A stretch of DNA of 64,000 nt, from the NCBI GenBank assembly GCA_028826165.1, contig JAPDFW010000094.1:186001-250000 (forward strand), written 5' to 3'. This DNA comes from Anaeramoeba ignava BMAN (lineage: Eukaryota; Protista; Anaeramoebae). Below the pieces are notes generated by a model that worked only from the letters and a program-made list of their open reading frames with translations, had not been told where the DNA came from and did no database searches. Numbering within the stretch: the stretch's first letter is position 1; each line of letters opens with the position of its first letter. Shown one piece after another: positions 22,568 through 63,500 of the stretch. The translations under genes and the position numbers were made by a program.

Positions 22568-24523
22568 TTAAAAAATTAAACATTTTTCTTTCTTTTGATT
22601 TTGATTATTAAATTTTTTAATTAATAAATCAAATAAATTTGGATTTGTTTGATTTAATTGAAAATAATCAATTCCAATTTCAATTTCTTCAATTATTTCT
22701 TGTGTAATTTGAATTTCTTCTTTAATTTGATTTGAATAAATCCAATATTCAAATATTTGAAATGATTTATTACTTAATTCACTATAATCTGTAACTTTAT
22801 TAGAAGTATCATTTGTTACAGATAAAAACATTCCTCGATATAATTCACTTCTCATTATTAATATTAATTTAGGAAATTTATATTGTTTTTCTTTTCTTTC
22901 AATTATAAAATCTTTTTCATTTTCATTTTTATTTAAATAAATTCTTTTCATTGTTTCTTCAATTTTTTCATTGTAATTTATAATTTCTTTAATTTCAGAA
23001 TATAATTTTGGATTTATTTTGGAATTATTTGAATAAATCATTTCAAATATTTGATTTGATTCTTTAATTGATTTATTTGAAATAATTTCTTGAAGTTTTT
23101 CAATTTCATTTTGATTTTGATTTAATCTATATTTCAATATTAATTTATGAGCTTCAATTATTTCTCCATTTTTGGTTTTAAATGAAATATCACAAAATTC
23201 TTTTCTTTCAAATAATTTTATCAAATCTTCTTCAAGATTGGAAAAATAAGGAGGAGAATAATAAAGGAATGATCTTTTATATCCACAATAAATATGATAA
23301 TTAGAAATATATTCATTAAATCTTAATTTAGGAAGTTCAATCTGAGATAGAATTAATTGATCTTTTATATTTCCAGTTCCTAATTGACCATATTCATTAT
23401 CTCCGAATATAATCATTTTTCTTTTGGAAGTTAAAATTAAATTATGATTAGTTCCAACAGAAAAATCAAGAATATTATCATCATTTTCAAATAAAGATGA
23501 TTTGATTTCAGTAAATTCACAAGTATCTTTGTTAAGTAGATTATATTGATAATTTCCACACGAATAAAGTGTTCTTTTTGGATTTTGATTTTGATTTTGA
23601 TTTTTATTTTGATTTTTATTTTGATTTTGATTTTGATTTTGATTTTGATTTTGATTTTGATTTTGATTTTGATTTTGATTTTGATTTTGATTTTGATTTT
23701 TATTTTGATTTTGATTTTGATTTTGATTTTGATTTTGATTTTGATTTTGAATTTCATTTTCAATCAACATTATTGAATGCCAATTTCCACATTGAATATC
23801 AATTATTTTGCCTTTTGGAATATTTTGGATTTTGGTTGATTTATCGATTTTTTCTTCTTTTCTTGATTCTCCTAATCCAAGTTGTCCAAATCGATTATCA
23901 CCGCATCCAAATAATTCTTGATTTGAATTTAAAAGAAAAACATGTTTTGAATTACTTTTTGAAAATATTTTAGAAACATTTTTCATCATTAAAATTGGTT
24001 TTTCTGTTTTATAAAGTGTTTCAGAATCAAAACCAAGTTGACCATAATCATTTGAACCAATTCCATAAGCATTTTGATTTGAAGTTAATAAATAAATTGA
24101 TTGATATCCGGAAACAATATCTTGAATTATTCTATCATTTGTATCTTCAATTAATGATGAAATATTGATAAATTCATTTGGATTATCTGGATTAATATCA
24201 ATTCCTTTGGCAAATACATTTCCTTCTATTGCTAAAATAGCTTCATTTCGATAACCAACAGTTACTTTTTGAATATTTTCTTCAATTTGGATTTTTTCAG
24301 GATTTTGTTTTGAATCATTTTCACTTAAATATTCTATTGCTTTTCCATTTTCAAAAAGGAAAATTGTTGAAAATCTTCCTGATGAAATTTGTTTAATTTG
24401 TTTTTCATTTTCATTTTCATTTTCAAATTTAAATTGAATTGGTTTTGTTATTTTATCTGGTTTATTTTTGAAAAGAATTGGATATTGATTTTGACCAACA
24501 AACCAAATATCATTCATATTCAT
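22568..24523 (-). CDS. RCC1-repeat / BTB-BTB protein, copy A, with (NQ)n insertion and C-terminal CLIF
   Basis: GSNDYGQLG, GDNRFGQLGLG, GDNEYGQLGTG; FCDISF..AHKLIL; ILIMRSELYRGMFLSV. Confidence 0.9.
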   Translation of the reverse strand: MNMNDIWFVGQNQYPILFKNKPDKITKPIQFKFENENENEKQIKQISSGRFSTIFLFENGKAIEYLSENDSKQNPEKIQIEENIQKVTVGYRNEAILAIEGNVFAKGIDINPDNPNEFINISSLIEDTNDRIIQDIVSGYQSIYLLTSNQNAYGIGSNDYGQLGFDSETLYKTEKPILMMKNVSKIFSKSNSKHVFLLNSNQELFGCGDNRFGQLGLGESRKEEKIDKSTKIQNIPKGKIIDIQCGNWHSIMLIENEIQNQNQNQNQNQNQNQNKNQNQNQNQNQNQNQNQNQNQNQNQNQNKNQNKNQNQNQNPKRTLYSCGNYQYNLLNKDTCEFTEIKSSLFENDDNILDFSVGTNHNLILTSKRKMIIFGDNEYGQLGTGNIKDQLILSQIELPKLRFNEYISNYHIYCGYKRSFLYYSPPYFSNLEEDLIKLFERKEFCDISFKTKNGEIIEAHKLILKYRLNQNQNEIEKLQEIISNKSIKESNQIFEMIYSNNSKINPKLYSEIKEIINYNEKIEETMKRIYLNKNENEKDFIIERKEKQYKFPKLILIMRSELYRGMFLSVTNDTSNKVTDYSELSNKSFQIFEYWIYSNQIKEEIQITQEIIEEIEIGIDYFQLNQTNPNLFDLLIKKFNNQNQKKEKCLIF

Positions 24524-24578
24524 CTTTTTTTTATTTTTCATTTTATTTTTGAAAAGAAAAAAATGAAAAAAAATAATT

Positions 24579-26357
24579 TTAATTTTGATTATTAAATTTG
24601 TTAATTAATAAATCAAATAAATTTGGATTTGTTTGATTTAATTGAAAATAATCAATTCCAATTTCAATTTCTTCAATAATTTCTTGTGTAATTTTAATTC
24701 CTTTTTTGATTTGATTTGAATAAATCCAATATTCAAATATTTGAAATGATTTATTACTTAATTCACTATAATCTGTAACTTTATTAGATTTATCATTTGT
24801 TACAGATAAAAACATTCCTCGATATAATTCACTTCTCATTATTAATATTAATTTAGGAAATTTATATTTCTTTTCTTTTCTTTCAATTATAAAATCTTTT
24901 TCATTTTCATTTAAATAAATCCTTTTCATTGTTTCTTCAATTTTTTCATTTAAATTTATAATTTCTTTAATTTCTAAATATAATTTTGGATTTATTTTGG
25001 AATTATTTGAATAAATCATTTCAAATATTTGATTTGATTCTTTAATTGATTTTTTTGAAATAATTTCTTGAAGTTTTTCAATTTCATTTTGATTTTGATT
25101 TAATCTATATTTTAATATTAATTTATGAGCTTCAATTATTTCTCCATTTTCTGTTTTAAATGAAATATCACAAAATTCTTTTCTTTCAAATAATTTTATC
25201 AAATCTTCTTCAAGATTGGAAAAAGAAAGAGGAGAATAATAAAGGAATGAATTCCAGTATCCACAATAAATATGATAATTAGAAATTTCTTCATTAAATC
25301 TTAATTCAGGAGGACGTACTTGAACTGGAATTTTATAATCAAGATAGGGGTAATCAATAATATTAAATTGAGGGAAATAATTCTTGCCAAATTCGATCAT
25401 TTTTCCATTTTCTGTTAAAATCAAAGTATGTTCATTTCCAACAGAAACTTCTCGAATATTATCATCATCTTCAAATAAAAATGATTTGAGTTCAGTAAAT
25501 TCATAAGTATCTTTGTAAAATCCATTCGCTTCCTCAAATCCACATGAATAAAGTTTTCTTTTTGGATTTTCATTTTGATTTTCATTTTCAATCAATATTA
25601 TTGAATGAATATATGTAGTTTGAATATCAATTATTTTGCCTTTTGGAATATTTTGGATTTTGGTTAATTTATGGATTTCTGTTTCTTCTTTTAATGTTTC
25701 TCCTAATCCAAGTTGACCGAAATTATTTCTTCCACAACAAAATAATTCTTGATTTGAATTTAAAAGAAAAACATGATTTGAAGAAATTCCTGAAAATATT
25801 TTAGAAACATTTTTCATTATTAAAATTGGTTTTTCTGTTTTATTAAGTGTTTCAGAATCAAAACCAAGTTGACCATATTCATTATCACCAATTCCATAAG
25901 CATTTTGATTTGAAGTTAATAAGTAAATTGAATTTCTTGAACAAACAATATCTTGAATTATTCTATCATTTTTATCTTCAATTAATGATGAAATATTGAT
26001 AAATTGATTTGTATTATTTGGATTGACATCATTTCCTTTTGCAAATACATTTCCTTCTATTGTTAAAATAGCTTCATTTTGAAAACCAACAGTTACTTTT
26101 TGAATATTTTCAATTTGGATTTTTTCAGGATTTTGTTTTGAATCATTTTCATTTAAGTATTCTATTGCTTTTCCATTTTTAAAAAGGAAAATTGTTGAAC
26201 AATAACCTGATGAAATTTGTTTAATTTGTTTTTCATTTTCATTTTCATTTTCATTTTCATTTTCAAATTTAAATTGAATTGGTTTTGTTATTTCTTTTGG
26301 TTTATTTTTGAAAAGAACTGGAGTTTGATTTTGACCAACAAACCAAATATCATTCAT
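24579..26357 (-). CDS. RCC1-repeat / BTB-BTB protein, copy B (tandem paralog)
   Basis: Near-identical to copy A over long stretches; likely start MNDIW at 26357. Confidence 0.9.
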   Translation of the reverse strand: MNDIWFVGQNQTPVLFKNKPKEITKPIQFKFENENENENENEKQIKQISSGYCSTIFLFKNGKAIEYLNENDSKQNPEKIQIENIQKVTVGFQNEAILTIEGNVFAKGNDVNPNNTNQFINISSLIEDKNDRIIQDIVCSRNSIYLLTSNQNAYGIGDNEYGQLGFDSETLNKTEKPILIMKNVSKIFSGISSNHVFLLNSNQELFCCGRNNFGQLGLGETLKEETEIHKLTKIQNIPKGKIIDIQTTYIHSIILIENENQNENPKRKLYSCGFEEANGFYKDTYEFTELKSFLFEDDDNIREVSVGNEHTLILTENGKMIEFGKNYFPQFNIIDYPYLDYKIPVQVRPPELRFNEEISNYHIYCGYWNSFLYYSPLSFSNLEEDLIKLFERKEFCDISFKTENGEIIEAHKLILKYRLNQNQNEIEKLQEIISKKSIKESNQIFEMIYSNNSKINPKLYLEIKEIINLNEKIEETMKRIYLNENEKDFIIERKEKKYKFPKLILIMRSELYRGMFLSVTNDKSNKVTDYSELSNKSFQIFEYWIYSNQIKKGIKITQEIIEEIEIGIDYFQLNQTNPNLFDLLINKFNNQN

Positions 26358-26384
26358 TTTATTTTTGAAAAAGAAAAAAAATAA

Positions 26385-26445
26385 TTTTTCATTTTTCATT
26401 TTTCATTTTTCATTTTTTTCATTTTTCATTTTTTTCATTTCATTT
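26385..26445 (+). promoter_or_regulatory. Tandem TTTTTCA (Inr-like TCATTT) array just upstream of an ATG; representative of many in the window
   Basis: The same motif occurs in sense orientation before most start codons. Confidence 0.55.
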
Positions 26446-35292: not shown

Positions 35293-36930
35293 ATGGAATT
35301 AAAAGTGGAAATCAAACAAAATCCAAATACAAAAAATCATCCAGGAGCAAAATACGGACAATGTATGGGAATTTATAAAGAAAATATATATATATTTGGA
35401 GGAGTAACAATGCAAGGATATGACAATAGAATTTCTGCATATAACATGAAGAAAGATGAATGGATTGAATTAACAGAACAAAACACAGAGGAAAGACCAA
35501 CACCAAGATCTGGGCATATGGGGACTTATCATGACGAGAAAATGTATATTTTTGGAGGACTTCATCGACACTTATTTTTCAACGACCTTTATTGCTTCGA
35601 CATGAACAAGCACAGTTGGAAGAAAATGGAAACAAAGGGTGAAGCGCCTGAGACGCGCTCTCGATTTGGGTTTACTTACTTCGATTCAAAGCTGTTTATT
35701 TTTGGTGGATTTCATGAAACAAATTATGTCAACACTCTCTATTCATTGGATCTTTTGACAAGCACTTGGTCGAAATGTGAAACATCAGGCGACACTTTCG
35801 TTGAAAAGGGAGGCTTCTCTACAGCTCTCGCAGAAACAATGGCGCGGCTGTATTTGTTTGGAGGGGTTCGTTTCAGACAGCACGATAACGACCTCTTCGA
35901 ATTGGATTTGAAAATGTATTCAATCAAGAAAATTATTTGCAATGGAAATGTACAGCCTTGCCCGCGTAGAAATCATTCAGCGATTGTCTACGATCAACGG
36001 ATGTTTGTCTTTGGGGGAAAAACTCAAGATGATGTGCCTCTAAATGATATTTTTATGTTTGATTTTAAATCACTTACTTGGACTGAAATTATTTATGATT
36101 CTTCCTCTGTTGTTCCTAGAGTTGGCTTTGCTATGGATATTGATAAGCGGTTTAATTGCTGGATTTATGGCGGTTATAATTATACTTTTTTGGATGATCT
36201 TGTCTGTTTTAGTTTTCCTAATATTTTCAATGATTCTTTATTTATTGATTTAAAATCTTTATTTATTCGCCAAGAATTAACAAATGAAAATATCATTTCC
36301 AAGGAAGGCTCCAACATCGGTTTCCACTATGTTCTTGTTCACCATCGTCTCAAGAGTCATTTGATTCGCACAAATAAATCTTCTTCTAAATCCCAAATTG
36401 AAAAACTTAAATTGACAAGTCGTAATTATGACGAAAGTGTTTTGAAATGCTTTTTGGTGTATTTATATTCCGCTATTGTCGATCTTAAAATTTTGCGTAA
36501 TTCTTTGCAATCGCTTCAACAACTCGAAGCTTTGGCGCGGAAGTTCCATTGCGATCCTTTAGTGGAATATCTAGAATTTCAAACATTCCAAAATAATTTA
36601 TTTGAGTTCTTAATTCAAGATTTAAAAGAGCTCAAAAATCAAGAAGAAACAAAGGATTTTACGATTAAAATTCCCAATGAAAACAAGCATATTCGTGTTC
36701 ATTCTTTGATTTTGTTGGCTAGAAGTGAACTTTATAGAGGCATGTTAATTAGTGTTAATGATGAAAGTAAATCAGCTCCTGATTTTTCTGGAAGAAGTTT
36801 TAAATCAATTAAAAAAATTGTGAAATATTTTTATACTGGAAAAATCAAAGGATTAACTACTCAAATTCGTGAAGAACTTGAAGATGCAAGTGATTATTAT
36901 GGATTTTCAGATTCATTAAAATTGGATTAA
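35293..36930 (+). CDS. Kelch-repeat / BTB-BTB protein (LZTR1-like architecture), intronless
   Basis: Multiple YIFGG kelch repeats; HSLILLARSELYRGML. Confidence 0.9.
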   Translation: MELKVEIKQNPNTKNHPGAKYGQCMGIYKENIYIFGGVTMQGYDNRISAYNMKKDEWIELTEQNTEERPTPRSGHMGTYHDEKMYIFGGLHRHLFFNDLYCFDMNKHSWKKMETKGEAPETRSRFGFTYFDSKLFIFGGFHETNYVNTLYSLDLLTSTWSKCETSGDTFVEKGGFSTALAETMARLYLFGGVRFRQHDNDLFELDLKMYSIKKIICNGNVQPCPRRNHSAIVYDQRMFVFGGKTQDDVPLNDIFMFDFKSLTWTEIIYDSSSVVPRVGFAMDIDKRFNCWIYGGYNYTFLDDLVCFSFPNIFNDSLFIDLKSLFIRQELTNENIISKEGSNIGFHYVLVHHRLKSHLIRTNKSSSKSQIEKLKLTSRNYDESVLKCFLVYLYSAIVDLKILRNSLQSLQQLEALARKFHCDPLVEYLEFQTFQNNLFEFLIQDLKELKNQEETKDFTIKIPNENKHIRVHSLILLARSELYRGMLISVNDESKSAPDFSGRSFKSIKKIVKYFYTGKIKGLTTQIREELEDASDYYGFSDSLKLD

Positions 36931-50225: not shown

Positions 50226-53200
50226 ATGGAAATTATTGATTTAATTTTAAAAAATAGATTTGGAGAAATTAAAAAGAAATTTAATAAAGATGATCCAATT
50301 TGGAAATTTAAAACTGTAGAATTGTTATTATAATTATTTTTCTTTTAAAGAAATAATCAAAAAAAAAATTTATTTAAAATTTAAAATTTAAAATAGAATT
50401 GTGTAAAAAAATTTTTTTTAACTTTGAAAAAAAAAGTTTGAATATTAAAATTTACATTTTATTTAGCAAGAAACACTTCTTCATTTAATTATGTGTAAAA
50501 AACCAACAACAAAACAAATTTTATTTTTATTAGAATATATTCAAGTTGATGTTGAATCTGTTTGAAATTAAAAAAATTAAAAAAATTAAAAAAATTAAAA
50601 ATATAAAAATTAAAAATAAAAAGATTGTAAAAATAAAATTTAATTAAAAATAATTGATTAATGTTTATAAATTTAAATAAAAAAGGCTGTAAAAAAATTA
50701 TTTTTATTTTTATAATCATTTTTTAAATATTATTTTTAGGGAATAACTCCTCTTCATTATGCAATAGAAAATAATGTTGATTTTGAAATTATTAGATTAC
50801 TTATTGACATGAATTCTGATATTGAAAAAAGAAATGTATAAAATCATTTTATTAATTTTAAAATCAAAAATATTTTTTATTATAATTTTTTCATTTAAGA
50901 ATGTAAATATTATTTTTTTAAAAAAATAAAACTTCTTTTATTAAAAAAATCTAATTCATTTTTTTGTAAATTAAAGATTGTAAATATTTAAAATATTAGA
51001 AATAATAAAAGAAATTAATTTTTTAGTTGAAAAAAAATTTAAGGGAGAAACTCCTTTATTTATTGCATTAAGAAAACAAAATTCAGATGCTGTTAATTAT
51101 TTAATTAAAAAAGGTGCAAGAATTAGCGCAATAGAAGTATTATAGATAATATAAATAATAATATAAATAATAAAAATAAACATTTTGATTTAGGGAGTAT
51201 TTTTAAAAGAAAAAAAGAAATTTTGAATTAAATAATTATTTAAATTTTGAAAGAGAGTAAAATTATTTAAAAATATTATTTATAAAAATATTTATATATA
51301 ATATATTTAAAAAGGGAAATTCTGTGTTACATTATGCTTGTCAATATCAAGCATCAACTTCATTTATAAAGGATTTAGTAGAATCAAGATTAGATATTAA
51401 TCAAGAAAATGTGTAAAAAAAATATATATTTACAATTTTTAAAAAAGAAAATAATTCTTTAAATTTATTTTTCTTGTTTATTTTTTGGATTAGATTTTCT
51501 TTTTTTTTAAATTTATTATTTGGAGAAAAATCTCAATTATTTAATTAATCAATAACCCATTTTTTTAAACAAAAAAAGCATCAAAATTCAACTTCTTTTC
51601 ATTTAGCTTTAAGTACAGAAAATCCAAATATTGAAACAATTAAATTTTTAATTTCAAAAGGAGCTGATCTTAATAAATCAAATGTAAATAAATTACTTCC
51701 AAAAATCTAATTAAAATATTCAAATTATTTTAGAAAGTAAATATTAAAATATTTAAAAAAAAGAAGAAATTAAATTAAGAAAATGAAAAATTATTTTTTA
51801 GTCTGTAAAAAAATTTAAAAAAATCTAATTTAAATTTAAATTAAATTAAATATCAAAAATGATATAATTTTAGTCAATGACTCCTCTTCATTTTTTATCT
51901 ACATTTTCTGATGATGTTGAAGTTTTAAAATTATTATTAGATTCTGGTGCTTTAATTGATAAATTAGATGTAAATATTAAATATTTTATTTTTTCAAGTA
52001 TTTAAATAAATAATATTTGAAATAAATTTTTATTTTTATAAGTGGGTAAATTTAATTCTTCTAAAAAAATAAATTTTTAATAATTATATTGATTAAATTC
52101 AAAAACAAAAGAAAGTAAAAAGAAAAATCTTTTTGAATATTATTTTTTTGATTAAAGATTAATTTGGTTTTTTTTTAAAAAAAAAATAAAAGAAAAATAA
52201 TCCTGTTGATATTGCTTTTCAAATGGGACATTCAAAGATTTTGGATTTCTTTTTGGGAAATGGAAAAAAATTTTCAAGACAATTAGAAGTTTGTTAAACA
52301 AAAAAATTTACAATCATTTTTTTATATTAATTATTATAATTATTTATTAGGAAGTAAAATTTTATTTCTTATTCATTTTATATCAAAAAAATGATTTTTT
52401 TAATTTTAAATTTTGAATTTAGATTTTTTTGGATTTTTTTAGAAATAAATCAGATCCAAAAACATTAGAAGTTTTAATGGATAATATGTTTATTTTCAAT
52501 TTGAAAATTGTAAAAAAGGAAATGAAAAAATTTAATTATTTAAAAAATATTTACAAAATATTTTTAGCAAGTAAATTTAAAAAAAATATTTAAAAAAGAT
52601 TTATGAAAAATATTTATGAAAAATTTGAAGGATTTTTCCAATTTTATTTTTAATTTTGAAACAACGGAAACGATAGATTTATTACATTTTATTAAACCAA
52701 GAGATGATTATAGATTTTTAATTGCAAAATCATTATTTAATTATGGAGGAGAAGTACTTTTAACAGAAGTAAAAAATTTAAAATTCATTTATAAAAATTT
52801 AAAATTAAAATTAAAATCAAAATCAATATTAAAAAAAGGATGATTCCGAACTTCAGGAATTAAGAGATAAAAATTTAAGTATAATTGATGATTTTAAAAC
52901 TTTATACAAAAATCAAGAATTTTGTGATTTAACAATTCATTGTATTGATGGAAAAATTAATCTTCACAAAACAATATTTAATGCAAGAGTTAATGACTTT
53001 ACAAAAGCAATAAATTTCCTTCAAGATCAACCTCTCAAATCCACAAAGAGAATTGTGAAGTTTTTATACACAGGAATGATAAAAAAAGAAACAGATTTTT
53101 CAAATGTGAAGAATTTTTATGAGAAAATAGATGAAAATTATAAAAAAAGAATAGGAAAAAAAGGATTAATTTCTGATATATCTAAACTTTATGAGAAAAA

Positions 53201-53546
53201 AGATACAAGCAATTTCATAATTAAAGTTTTGGATCAAGAAATTCATGTTCATCGAGAAATTTTAATTGCAAGATGCGGTTTATTTCAAGGAATGTTTTTG
53301 GCAGCTAGAGATGATAAATCAAATTTTGTTAATGATTACAGTGGAAAATCTTTTCAAGCAATTTCGTTGTTTATCAAATTCTTATATTTTGATGTTTTGG
53401 ATGATATCCAAAATTTAGATTTAATTGATGAATTAAATGATGCTCATGATTATTACCAATTAAATTCTAATTCAATTTTTTATTCGGAATTGGAAAAAAT
53501 TAAGGATAAAACAAATTATTATTATTATATTGATTCAAAAAAATAA
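50226..53546 (+). CDS. Ankyrin-repeat / BTB-BTB protein; 11 conventional exons (50226-50315, 50467-50559, 50740-50835, 51044-51136, 51315-51410, 51579-51683, 51874-51969, 52193-52288, 52423-52509, 52631-52768, 52839-53546) plus 13 micro-exons
   Basis: One ankyrin repeat per exon (GITPLHYA, GETPLFIA, GNSVLHYA, MTPLHFL); BTB motifs FCDLTI..LHK and HREILIARCGLFQGMFL; all introns phase 0. Confidence 0.88.
50397..52570 (+). other. Array of micro-exons: 50397-50402 (NC), 50624-26 (I), 50686-88 (A), 50900-02 (N), 50977-79 (I), 51194-96 (G), 51254-56 (R), 51734-36 (K), 51802-04 (S), 52043-45 (W), 52112-14 (K), 52351-53 (E), 52568-70 (Q)
   Basis: Each is AG-codon-GTA; 12 of 13 donors are GTAAA(A/T). 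They are evenly spaced, giving 50-81-nt introns, and restore full ankyrin repeat length. Confidence 0.82.
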
Positions 53547-59920: not shown

Positions 59921-60416
59921 ATGTGTAATAAATTTTCAAAAAAGTGTTTTGAGAATTTTTGTTGTTATATTTTATTATTTACAACAATAGTTGCTCCAGT
60001 AATTTTTATTAAGAATTTTTAAAAAAAAAAAAAAAATTTAAATTAAAAAAATTTTAATAAAAATTTTAATTGAAAAAATAAATAAAAGTTTGGATTTATT
60101 TTATTAGTTTATGGACATGTAAAAGAAAATATAACATTAATGATAATTGGAGGAACAATTTTTGGACTTCCATTTCTATTTTCAATTCAAATGTGTTTTT
60201 GGAAAAAAAAAACAAAGTAAAAAAAAATTATTTTTCTTTTTAGAAAAATTTTAAATTAAATTTTTAAATTAAAAAAATTTTTTATTTAAAAAAAGTGATT
60301 TTTCTTCTGCAAGTGTAAATCAAACTGTAAATGTTGATGATCATCAAACAGAAATTGGAACATCTGAACAAGTAAATATAGATGAGGATAGACCTGCTTT
60401 TGAATTATGGTTTTGA
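59921..60416 (+). CDS. Third member of the small membrane-protein family; exons 59921-59998, 60089-60216, 60296-60416
   Basis: 78-nt first exon ending P|FG and a phase-2 second intron after the TM plus basic patch, as at 31423 and 32640; open frame to TGA. Not in the ORF track. Confidence 0.7.
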
Positions 60417-60522: not shown

Positions 60523-63500
60523 ATGTTTTTAAAACCAACAAATTCACCAGATACAGAACATACACTTACAAATAAAGTGTTTGTTTCTCAAGATGATTAT
60601 TATCAAATTATTTCTGATCAAAACAAGTAAAAAAAAATAATAAAAAAAAATAATAAAAATAATAAATAAAAAAAAAATAAAATTAAATTTAATTCAAAAT
60701 ATTTTGTTTAAATTAAAATTTATTTATAATTAAAATTTTAAAATTTCTTTTCTTTTATATTTTATAAATAATTATTGTAGAGAACCTCATCATTATGCTA
60801 TGATTAATGGGCATTTTATTTACAATATTTCACCATCTCCAAAAATATCAAAAGGACAAGTTGCCTTATCAAATATTCAAAGAATGACTTGTTCTATTGG
60901 ATATTCAGACATGGTTGAAGTAATTATTTATTTTTTTATGTTTAAAACTTATTAATTTATTTTTTATTTAATTTAATTTATTTAAAAAAAAAAGTTAAAA
61001 CAATTTTTTATTCCTGAAGAAGATTTTTATATTTCAGATTTAACTTTAGAAATGGGTTTAGCTGTTAAAAATCCTGTTGCAAAAAAAACTAAAATTGATA
61101 GTGGAAAACTTTGTGAAAAAATAATTAGAACTCTTAATAATCAAGTTTGGATTTAATTTATAAAATGAATTTAATTTATAAAATGAATTTAATTTAATTT
61201 AATTTATAAAAATTAAAATGAATTTAATTTATAAAAATGAATTTAATTTAATTTAATTTAATTTAATTTAATTTAATTTAATTTATAAAATGAATTTAAT
61301 TTAATTTAATTTAATTTAATTTAATTTAATTTAATTTAATTTAATTTAATTTATAAAATTATAGGTTTTAACTCTTAAACAAAAATTTATAATTGATTAT
61401 GAAGTTCTTTTCTTAAAATGTCTTGTTAAAGATGTTAAAGTAGTTTCTCTTTCTGAAATGATGGGAGAAAGTTCAGAAATTTCAGAAATATCAGTAAAAG
61501 AAGATAGTAAGAATTAAAATTAAAATTAAAATTAAAATCAATATTAAAATTAAAATTAAAATTAAAATTAAAATTAAAATTAAAATTAATATTAAAATTA
61601 AAATTAAAATTAAAATTAAAATTAAAATTAAAATTAAAATCAATATTAAAATTAAAATTAAAATTGAAATTAAAATTAAAATTAAAATTAAAATTAAAAT
61701 TAAAATTAAAATTAAAATTAAAATTAAAATTAAAATTGAAATTAAAATTAAATTTAAAATTAAAATTAAAATCAAAATTGAAATTAAAATTAAATTTATA
61801 GAAGATAATCCACAATTTAGAGGATTATTAACATCACAAACACAAATATTCTTTGAAAAAACTGGAGAATCAGAAATTACAATTTCAGGTCAATCAAAGT
61901 AAAAGAGAAAATTAAAATTAAAATTAAATTCAAAATTAATTAAAAAATTATTTATAAAAATTTATTAGTCGAACAAGAACATCAATTTTTAGACCAGATT
62001 GGAATTTTGAAAGTATGGGAATTGGAGGTCTTGATAAAGAATTTAGTGATATTTTTAGAAGAGCTTTTGCTTCTCGTGTTTTTCCACCATCAGTTATTAG
62101 AAAATTAGGAGTTTCTCATGTTAGAGGTATTTTATTATGGGGTCCTCCTGGAACTGGTAAAACTTTAATGGCAAGACAAATTGGAAAAATGTTAAATGGA
62201 AAAGAACCAAAGGTTGTTTATCATTTTAGAAAAATGAATTTAATTTAATTTAATTTAATTTATGAAATGAATTTAATTTAATTTAATTTAATTTAATTTA
62301 TAAAATGAATTTAATTTAATTTAATTTAATTTAATTTAATTTAATTTAATTTAATTTAATTATTAAAATGAATTTAATTTAATTTATAAAATGAATTTAA
62401 TTTAATTTAATTCAAAAAATGAATTTAATTTAATTTATAAAATGAATTTAATTTAATTTAATTTAATTTAATTTAATTTAATTTCATTTAATTTATAAAA
62501 TGAATTTAATTTAATTTATATTTTTATATATTAATTTATAAAATGAATTAAAATGGATTTAATTTAATTTGATTTAATTTATAAAATGAATTTAATTTAA
62601 TTTATATTTTTATATATTAATTTATAAAAGGTTGTAAATGGACCAGAAATCTTGAATAAATACGTTGGACAAAGTGAAGAAAACATAAGAAAACTATTCG
62701 AAGATGCAGAAAAAGAACAATTAGAAAGAGGAGATGAATCCGATTTACACATTATAATATTTGATGAAATCGATGCAATATGTCGAAAAAGAGGAACAAG
62801 AAACGATGGAACTGGAGTAGGAGACACAGTAGTAAATCAACTATTAGCCAAAATAGATGGAGTTGATTCACTTAATAACATTTTAGTAATAGGAATGACA
62901 AACAGAAAAGATATGATAGATGAAGCACTATTAAGACCAGGAAGATTAGAAGTGCAAATGGAAATCAACTTGCCAAACGAATACGGAAGAATCCAAATCT
63001 TCCGAATTCACACTTCAAAAATGCAAAAAGAAAAAATGTTGGCAAAAGATGTTAATTTGGAAGAATTGGCAAAATTAACAAAGAATTTCTCAGGAGCAGA
63101 AATTGAAGGACTTGTCAAAAGCGCAACATCTTTTGCATTAAACAGAAGAATTGATCCCGATAATTTATCCAAACCAGTTAGTCTTGAAGGGATCCAAGTA
63201 ACAAGAGATGATTTTTTAACAGCATTAAGAGAAGTAAAACCAGCATTTGGAGTTGAAGAGGATCAATTTGAACCGTGTTTAAGAAATGGAATAATAAATT
63301 ATGGATCTAGATTTGATAAATTATATGAAATTGGAATGTCGTATCTTCAACAAGTATCAGTTTCAGAAAGAACACCTTTAATTTCCGTTCTTGTAAAAGG
63401 AGCCGCAGGAACAGGAAAAACAGCATTTGCTGCAAAATTATCAATGGATTCAAAATTTCCGTTTGTCAAAATGATTTCCGCTGATTCAATGATTGGAATG

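Follow-up and report, generated by a model that had tools for sequence, protein, structure and literature searches.

Putative single-codon micro-exons at the hairpin tips of ankyrin repeats in a BTB gene of Anaeramoeba ignava

An ankyrin-BTB gene of Anaeramoeba ignava BMAN raises the question of whether isolated triplets in its introns, each preceded by AG and followed by GTA, are intronic sequence or exons of a single codon. The gene lies on the plus strand of a 64,000-nucleotide stretch of contig JAPDFW010000094.1 (assembly GCA_028826165.1, positions 186,001 to 250,000), here called the window, whose own numbering is used below. The initial annotation, made from the letters alone, had read 13 such islands, 12 of three bases and one of six, as exons hidden in introns that are otherwise G-poor. 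All 13 AG-NNN(NNN)-GTA islands were recovered at the same coordinates with the same triplets and donors, and the introns contain only 2 to 10 G each. Such a pattern might arise by chance or from faulty assembly where DNA is very rich in A+T, as the region is about 85% A+T and GTAAA and TAG or AAG are common words. However, a count of AG-N(n)-GTA in the 10 introns of the public gene model (1623 nt) gives 12 matches at n = 3, one at n = 1, one at n = 6, and none at any other n from 0 to 9, and the lone n = 1 match overlaps an n = 3 island. The 12 islands at n = 3, the only enriched spacer, compare with 0.88 on average, and never more than 5, in 5000 conservative shuffles that preserve every AG and GTA word. 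An AG stands exactly 3 or 6 nt before 13 of the 15 internal donor-like words GTA[AT][AT]. The introns are no more similar to one another than shuffled introns are, which excludes a collapsed repeat and makes any duplication old, and paralogs show the same layout on their coding strand, as does another species whose genome was assembled separately. Chance and artefact are refuted by the shuffles and by the paralog transcripts described below, and we give this explanation practically no credence.

With the islands used as exons, the proposed count of 24 exons holds, and a single frame of 579 aa is obtained, with 23 GT-AG introns, all in phase 0, and with every exon symmetric and frame-neutral. 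Searches and comparisons used individual exons or public protein models, the joined frame serving for translation only. The public model, KAJ5070582.1 (P0001, annotated as an "ankyrin repeat-containing protein"), joins 11 large exons directly into 565 aa and lacks the 14 island residues, which correspond to 42 of 1740 coding bases and 14 of 579 residues. Exon 1 (50226 to 50315; 30 aa) begins with the start codon and is identical to residues 1 to 30 of the public model. It is followed by a 6-nt micro-exon for Asn-Cys (50397 to 50402), which holds both hairpin positions together and is missing from the public model, and by a large exon with a divergent first ankyrin repeat (50467 to 50559; 31 aa), supported by the frame and the public model. 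The single-codon exons that follow are each inferred from an AG-NNN-GTA island and from the frame. Ile (50624 to 50626) and Ala (50686 to 50688) precede an ankyrin exon of 32 aa (50740 to 50835; Pfam Ank positions 2 to 32 of 33), Asn (50900 to 50902) and Ile (50977 to 50979) precede one of 31 aa (51044 to 51136; match from Pfam Ank position 2), and Gly (51194 to 51196) and Arg (51254 to 51256) precede one of 32 aa (51315 to 51410; Pfam Ank positions 2 to 32). A 98-nt version of this last exon, with a donor at 51413, was rejected because it breaks the frame. After an island-free intron comes an ankyrin exon of 35 aa (51579 to 51683) that starts with His-Gln at the island positions and whose residue 4 corresponds to Pfam Ank position 3. 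Lys (51734 to 51736) and Ser (51802 to 51804) then precede an ankyrin exon of 32 aa (51874 to 51969; Pfam Ank match), and Trp (52043 to 52045) and Lys (52112 to 52114) precede the last, divergent ankyrin repeat (52193 to 52288; 32 aa), which has no Pfam match alone. The linker comprises Glu (52351 to 52353), a large exon of 29 aa (52423 to 52509), Gln (52568 to 52570), and a large exon of 46 aa (52631 to 52768); the two large exons rest on the frame and the public model, and the two micro-exons are without a repeat-register control. The last exon (52839 to 53546; 235 aa and the stop codon) is identical to the end of KAJ5070582.1 and contains two BTB/POZ stretches (PF00651, E value 7e-13, 49.1 bits against a cut-off of 20.5). 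The product is presumably a putative Cullin-3-type BTB adaptor that would bind substrates through its ankyrin repeats, a function that is inferred and untested.

The introns so defined measure 50 to 81 nt, as proposed, with a median of 64 nt, except for one of 168 nt, and those leading from an island to the next exon measure 51 to 78 nt. Each ankyrin repeat would consist of one large phase-0 exon, encoding the helix-turn-helix in 31 to 32 aa, and of tip residues on separate exons. Two consecutive single-codon exons would encode the variable beta-turn tip residues at five of the seven junctions, a 6-nt exon would do so at one further junction, and two more single-codon exons would lie in the linker. 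The claim that separate tip exons recur in almost every unit is supported with this qualification, as the remaining junction (51411 to 51578) has no island and consists of the 168-nt intron, with a GTGTAA donor. GTAAA follows 12 of the 13 micro-exons, so the donors after micro-exons belong to the strongest class. A second donor class in A. ignava, GTTTG, is present at 50560 and 52289 and also follows micro-exons elsewhere (locus L004, after residue 296 of KAJ5078719.1); counts based on GTA are therefore lower bounds. No branch-point consensus at a fixed distance was found in the introns of the gene. Two candidate micro-exons were seen outside the ankyrin gene, both in AT-rich context, one of 1 nt (ag|A|gttaaa at 61373, minus strand) and one of 8 nt (59991 to 59998, plus strand).

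The ankyrin fold provides a register against which the islands can be read. Five of the large exons taken singly match PF00023, three of them above the curated cut-off, and because single large exons match positions 2 to 32 of 33, two positions per repeat are left over. Repeat spacing is 33 to 35 aa with the islands, as the initial annotation had it, and 31 to 34 aa without them, rather than the 31 to 33 aa given there; the idea that islands lengthen repeats does not apply to those at 52351 and 52568, both of which follow the last ankyrin repeat. Outside Anaeramoeba, 248 of 257 ankyrin repeats have a distance of 12 from G(A..N) to T(PL). In public Anaeramoeba models this distance is 10 in 28, 11 in 6, and 12 in 28 of 63 repeats, a set that takes in a few A. 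flamelloides and transcript-derived proteins. With the islands, all six inter-repeat junctions of the ankyrin-BTB gene have a distance of 12 by hand count. The gene also contains an internal control, in that the only island-free junction precedes the 35-aa exon, which itself begins with both tip residues. In the motif D-x-x-G-x-T-P-L-H, the islands supply both residues between D and G, where the hairpin varies most, and these residues are among those randomised in libraries of designed ankyrin repeat proteins (DARPins). Judged from the predicted protein, the islands restore the ankyrin register by supplying the two beta-turn residues on which normal repeat spacing depends.

The initial annotation described this layout for a single gene. 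It is present in that gene but is not confined to it, and recurs genome-wide. Seven of nine other BTB-family loci have between 5 and 11 three-base islands apiece, which are on the coding strand and lie almost entirely upstream of the BTB exon. At the mapped paralog junctions, the number of islands mostly equals the number of missing residues: two missing residues correspond to two islands, a next exon that begins a residue earlier to one island, and complete sequence interrupted by a single short intron to none. Among the exceptions, some junctions remain one residue short, and one, after residue 355 of KAJ5069329.1 (L009), has four islands (Phe, Asn, Leu, and Gly) where two would suffice, which suggests either that the loop is longer there or that codons are chosen from several. 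As a control, five composition-matched introns (106 to 424 nt) of two WD40-BTB genes contain no island. The proposed comparison with control introns came out low for both shuffled and WD40-BTB introns, with only these five of the latter compared. The BTB family is greatly expanded in the A. ignava genome, with 150 scored matches, and the window itself contains three further BTB genes with long open frames, two RCC1-BTB and one Kelch-BTB, at 22568 to 26399 and 35293 to 36930.

Across the 42.8-Mb assembly, 1075 tandem pairs of WAG-NNN-GTAWW lie 45 to 75 nt apart, compared with 43 pairs for a 4-nt spacer and 103 for a 2-nt spacer, and many of the matches in these spacer controls are simple repeats or coding repeats. 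The figure of 1075 includes overlapping pairs within chains, misses GTTTGA donors, and is not an exon count. A reversed-pattern control gave a high number of matches (552), which were read, without a check, as the coding word ATG-NNN-GAW, and the spacer controls are preferred. Within the first island of the pairs, TAA or TAG never occurs, compared with 47 occurrences of TAT or TAC. This avoidance is as expected of translated phase-0 codons, and competition between splice sites could partly explain it. As many as six 3-nt islands follow one another in chains on the minus strand at G000:C2:7157-9206, where the introns between them are unrelated, and at G000:C1:1058077-1073174, where they are related; the triplets ATG, ATT, TTG, and GGG of the latter look, from the letters, as if they were in a different phase. 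At G000:C1:408000-413200, also on the minus strand (L011 to L033), an exon for BTB and coiled coil is followed by long runs of single-codon islands, about 30 in all, with nearly identical A+T introns of 67 to 91 nt between them; in a few units the donor has been lost. This region is, on its sequence, a young tandem duplication of an intron-plus-codon unit, and it may represent a low-complexity tail encoded codon by codon or a decaying array.

Whether island codons reach mRNA can be judged from paralogs in EukProt EP01156, a set of A. ignava proteins whose names indicate de novo transcript assembly and ORF calling. The EukProt protein P0363 (616 aa) is equal to the NCBI model KAJ5069543.1 (P0032, 614 aa) with an additional K-S in an ankyrin hairpin. 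The flanking exons are 241 nt apart (G000:C93:196028-196268), and the gap holds ag|AAA|gtaatt and, 62 nt further on, ag|AGT|gtaaaa, which define introns of 67, 62, and 106 nt. The genomic pattern used for this gap specified only the Lys island, and the Ser island had not been asked for. K-S in P0363 together with both islands places two consecutive one-codon exons in an mRNA in the predicted order. A second protein, P0099, is equal to KAJ5076420.1 (P0391) over the shared part, with one hairpin Ser in addition and one substitution elsewhere, and at the Ser the genome has ag|AGT|gtaaaa, a 64-nt intron, and the next exon. All three extra residues, in both informative pairs, map to islands. Both pairs are paralogs of the gene in the window, and the support amounts to three residues from assembled ORFs rather than reads. 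Homolog and cluster searches of EukProt found no transcript-derived copy of the window's ankyrin-BTB gene. Of the remaining proteins, none of which is informative on this point, P0003 and P0043 reach only the BTB exon, P0048 is identical to its own NCBI model, and P0009 gave no island upstream of its BTB anchor, which a long intron or a split anchor may explain. P0009 (EukProt EP01156 P002626) also appears chimeric, as residues 1 to 79 match contig C82 and the remainder C104, and the transcript set contains assembly errors.

These data bear on the possibility that the islands are intronic, either as recursive splice sites, with the triplet lost in stepwise splicing, or as decayed remnants, and that the 565-aa public model is the product. 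In the public model the large exons directly follow one another, and the evidence includes no read or transcript of the window gene. Aligners are, however, expected to produce such direct joins, which do not show that the codons are skipped. A recursive site has an AG|GT of zero length, and the introns of the ankyrin-BTB gene contain none (n = 0); the spacers are 3 or 6 nt, and a recursive, or ratchet, site was rejected. Removed triplets would not need to be exactly 3 nt long, to avoid stop codons, or to match missing residues, and the paralog transcripts contain the island codons. We consider an intronic origin very improbable. The preferred reading, held with high confidence, is that the islands are exons of the window gene's own mRNA, which encodes 579 rather than 565 aa. 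The single-codon-exon interpretation of the initial annotation is supported in this form by frame, intron size, register, complementarity across the family, stop avoidance, and paralog transcripts, and inclusion in the window gene itself remains an inference without a transcript of that gene.

Similar islands are found in Anaeramoeba flamelloides. In KAJ6250262.1, a 333-nt hairpin intron contains ag|TTT|gtaaga, which raises the distance from 11 to 12. In KAJ3443821.1, a 363-nt gap contains ag|AAA|gtaatt and ag|GGA|gtaagt, which yield a distance of 12 provided that splicing uses a donor 15 nt further along, and the public model seems from the sequence to use a donor 15 nt too early. Both A. flamelloides loci (L045 and L046) have single-codon islands at matching hairpin positions with strong donors. 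In the same species, no convincing island was seen in the two introns that P0384 has at hairpin positions (2.7 and 3.4 kb), and none stood out in the A. flamelloides search for P0373, P0377, P0371, and P0089. The single-codon layout probably predates the split between A. ignava and A. flamelloides, a judgement made with neither transcripts nor a shuffle test in A. flamelloides.

It is inferred that the major spliceosome removes each nearly G-free GT-AG intron of 50 to 81 nt singly, by intron definition. If introns are removed successively, a 3-nt exon need never be recognised as an exon, as the codon would simply form the end of a larger exon once one flanking intron is gone. Each AG and each GTA would be an unambiguous site because the introns are short and G is so rare. 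The layout is inferred to have originated by phase-0 intron gain at adjacent hairpin codons of an ancestral repeat and may have spread as the symmetric repeat module, and also whole genes, were duplicated. A refinement that does not exclude the preferred reading is that the islands are real exons and alternatively spliced, with one, both, or none skipped, varying the length and residues of the binding loops. All exons are symmetric and frame-neutral, the islands encode the most variable hairpin positions, and one paralog has four islands where two give the usual spacing. Introns of 200 to 400 nt are also spliced in the A. ignava genome, which leaves room for the large exons to be joined directly. 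However, both informative transcripts include every island seen (3 of 3), skipping would shorten a hairpin of nearly fixed length, and the donors after the micro-exons are of the strongest class. Alternative use of the islands is accordingly regarded as unlikely, though not negligible. Still more speculative, and somewhat less probable, is the proposal that optional single-codon exons at the ligand-contacting beta-turn act as a splicing-encoded diversity generator in Anaeramoeba. If that were true, tip residues would be included, skipped, or chosen, and one gene would yield a DARPin-like repertoire of BTB substrate adaptors.

With the islands read as exons, the gene takes exon architecture to its limit, with consecutive one-codon exons as a routine feature of a genome. 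In A. ignava, both pure intron definition and the existence of a minimum exon size could then be tested directly. The layout also bears on intron gain and retention at adjacent codons and on their location at the most variable, target-contacting residues of the repeat. Many public Anaeramoeba protein models are expected to be short by one or two residues per repeat, with the number of introns underestimated.

Vertebrate ankyrins have one repeat per exon, with introns at matching repeat positions. The A. ignava gene resembles such one-repeat-per-exon genes in the matching positions of its introns, and we know of no described ankyrin gene with tip residues on their own exons. The A. ignava genome paper reports introns of 91.86% A+T and does not mention microexons (PMC11550330). 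No paper on microexons in Anaeramoeba was found, and none on consecutive single-codon exons running through a domain family, in agreement with the initial annotation, most subscription journals being outside the search. NAGNAG tandem acceptors likewise produce single-codon differences between splice forms (PMC3250501), but this mechanism was rejected here, as full introns separate the codon from both neighbouring exons (51 to 78 nt in this gene and 62 to 106 nt in the paralogs). In the micro-exon genes (MEGs) of Schistosoma, which share with the A. ignava gene very small symmetric exons and the possibility of frame-neutral skipping, the greater part of the coding sequence consists of micro-exons, a signal peptide is present in every product, and variation by skipping is documented (PMC4350168). 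By contrast, only 14 of 579 residues of the ankyrin-BTB protein are on micro-exons, of one codon each apart from the 6-nt one, skipping is not shown, and no signal peptide is obvious by eye; MEG membership was rejected on the small share of coding bases in micro-exons.

Also among the closest systems are the microexons of animals (3 to 27 nt) and plants (1 to 15 nt), among which cases of 3 nt and 1 nt have been described (PMC8831610; review, PMC13149111). Like the A. ignava islands, these are tiny, lie between canonical GT-AG introns, often preserve the frame, and are often missed in annotation. The islands meet the microexon criterion of an internal exon of at most 27 nt between canonical introns of normal size, and also the coding criterion, with the frame preserved and stops avoided (TAA and TAG, with TGA outside the test). 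The criterion of presence in mature mRNA is satisfied by islands of this type in the paralogs and is inferred for the window gene. In Caenorhabditis elegans, the usual helper PRP-40 is dispensable for microexons whose flanking introns are very short, and the authors of that study attribute this to intron definition (PMC8378409); those introns measure 49 to 58 nt, compared with 50 to 81 nt in the A. ignava gene. There, two exceptional microexons are involved, whereas in A. ignava a large gene family has this arrangement as its standard form, and whereas animal and plant microexons are mostly single in the cases consulted, A. ignava has consecutive one-codon exons at nearly every repeat and more than 1000 tandem pairs. 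The islands behave as ordinary microexons and meet the criteria tested, and they are a new, extreme variant of microexons.
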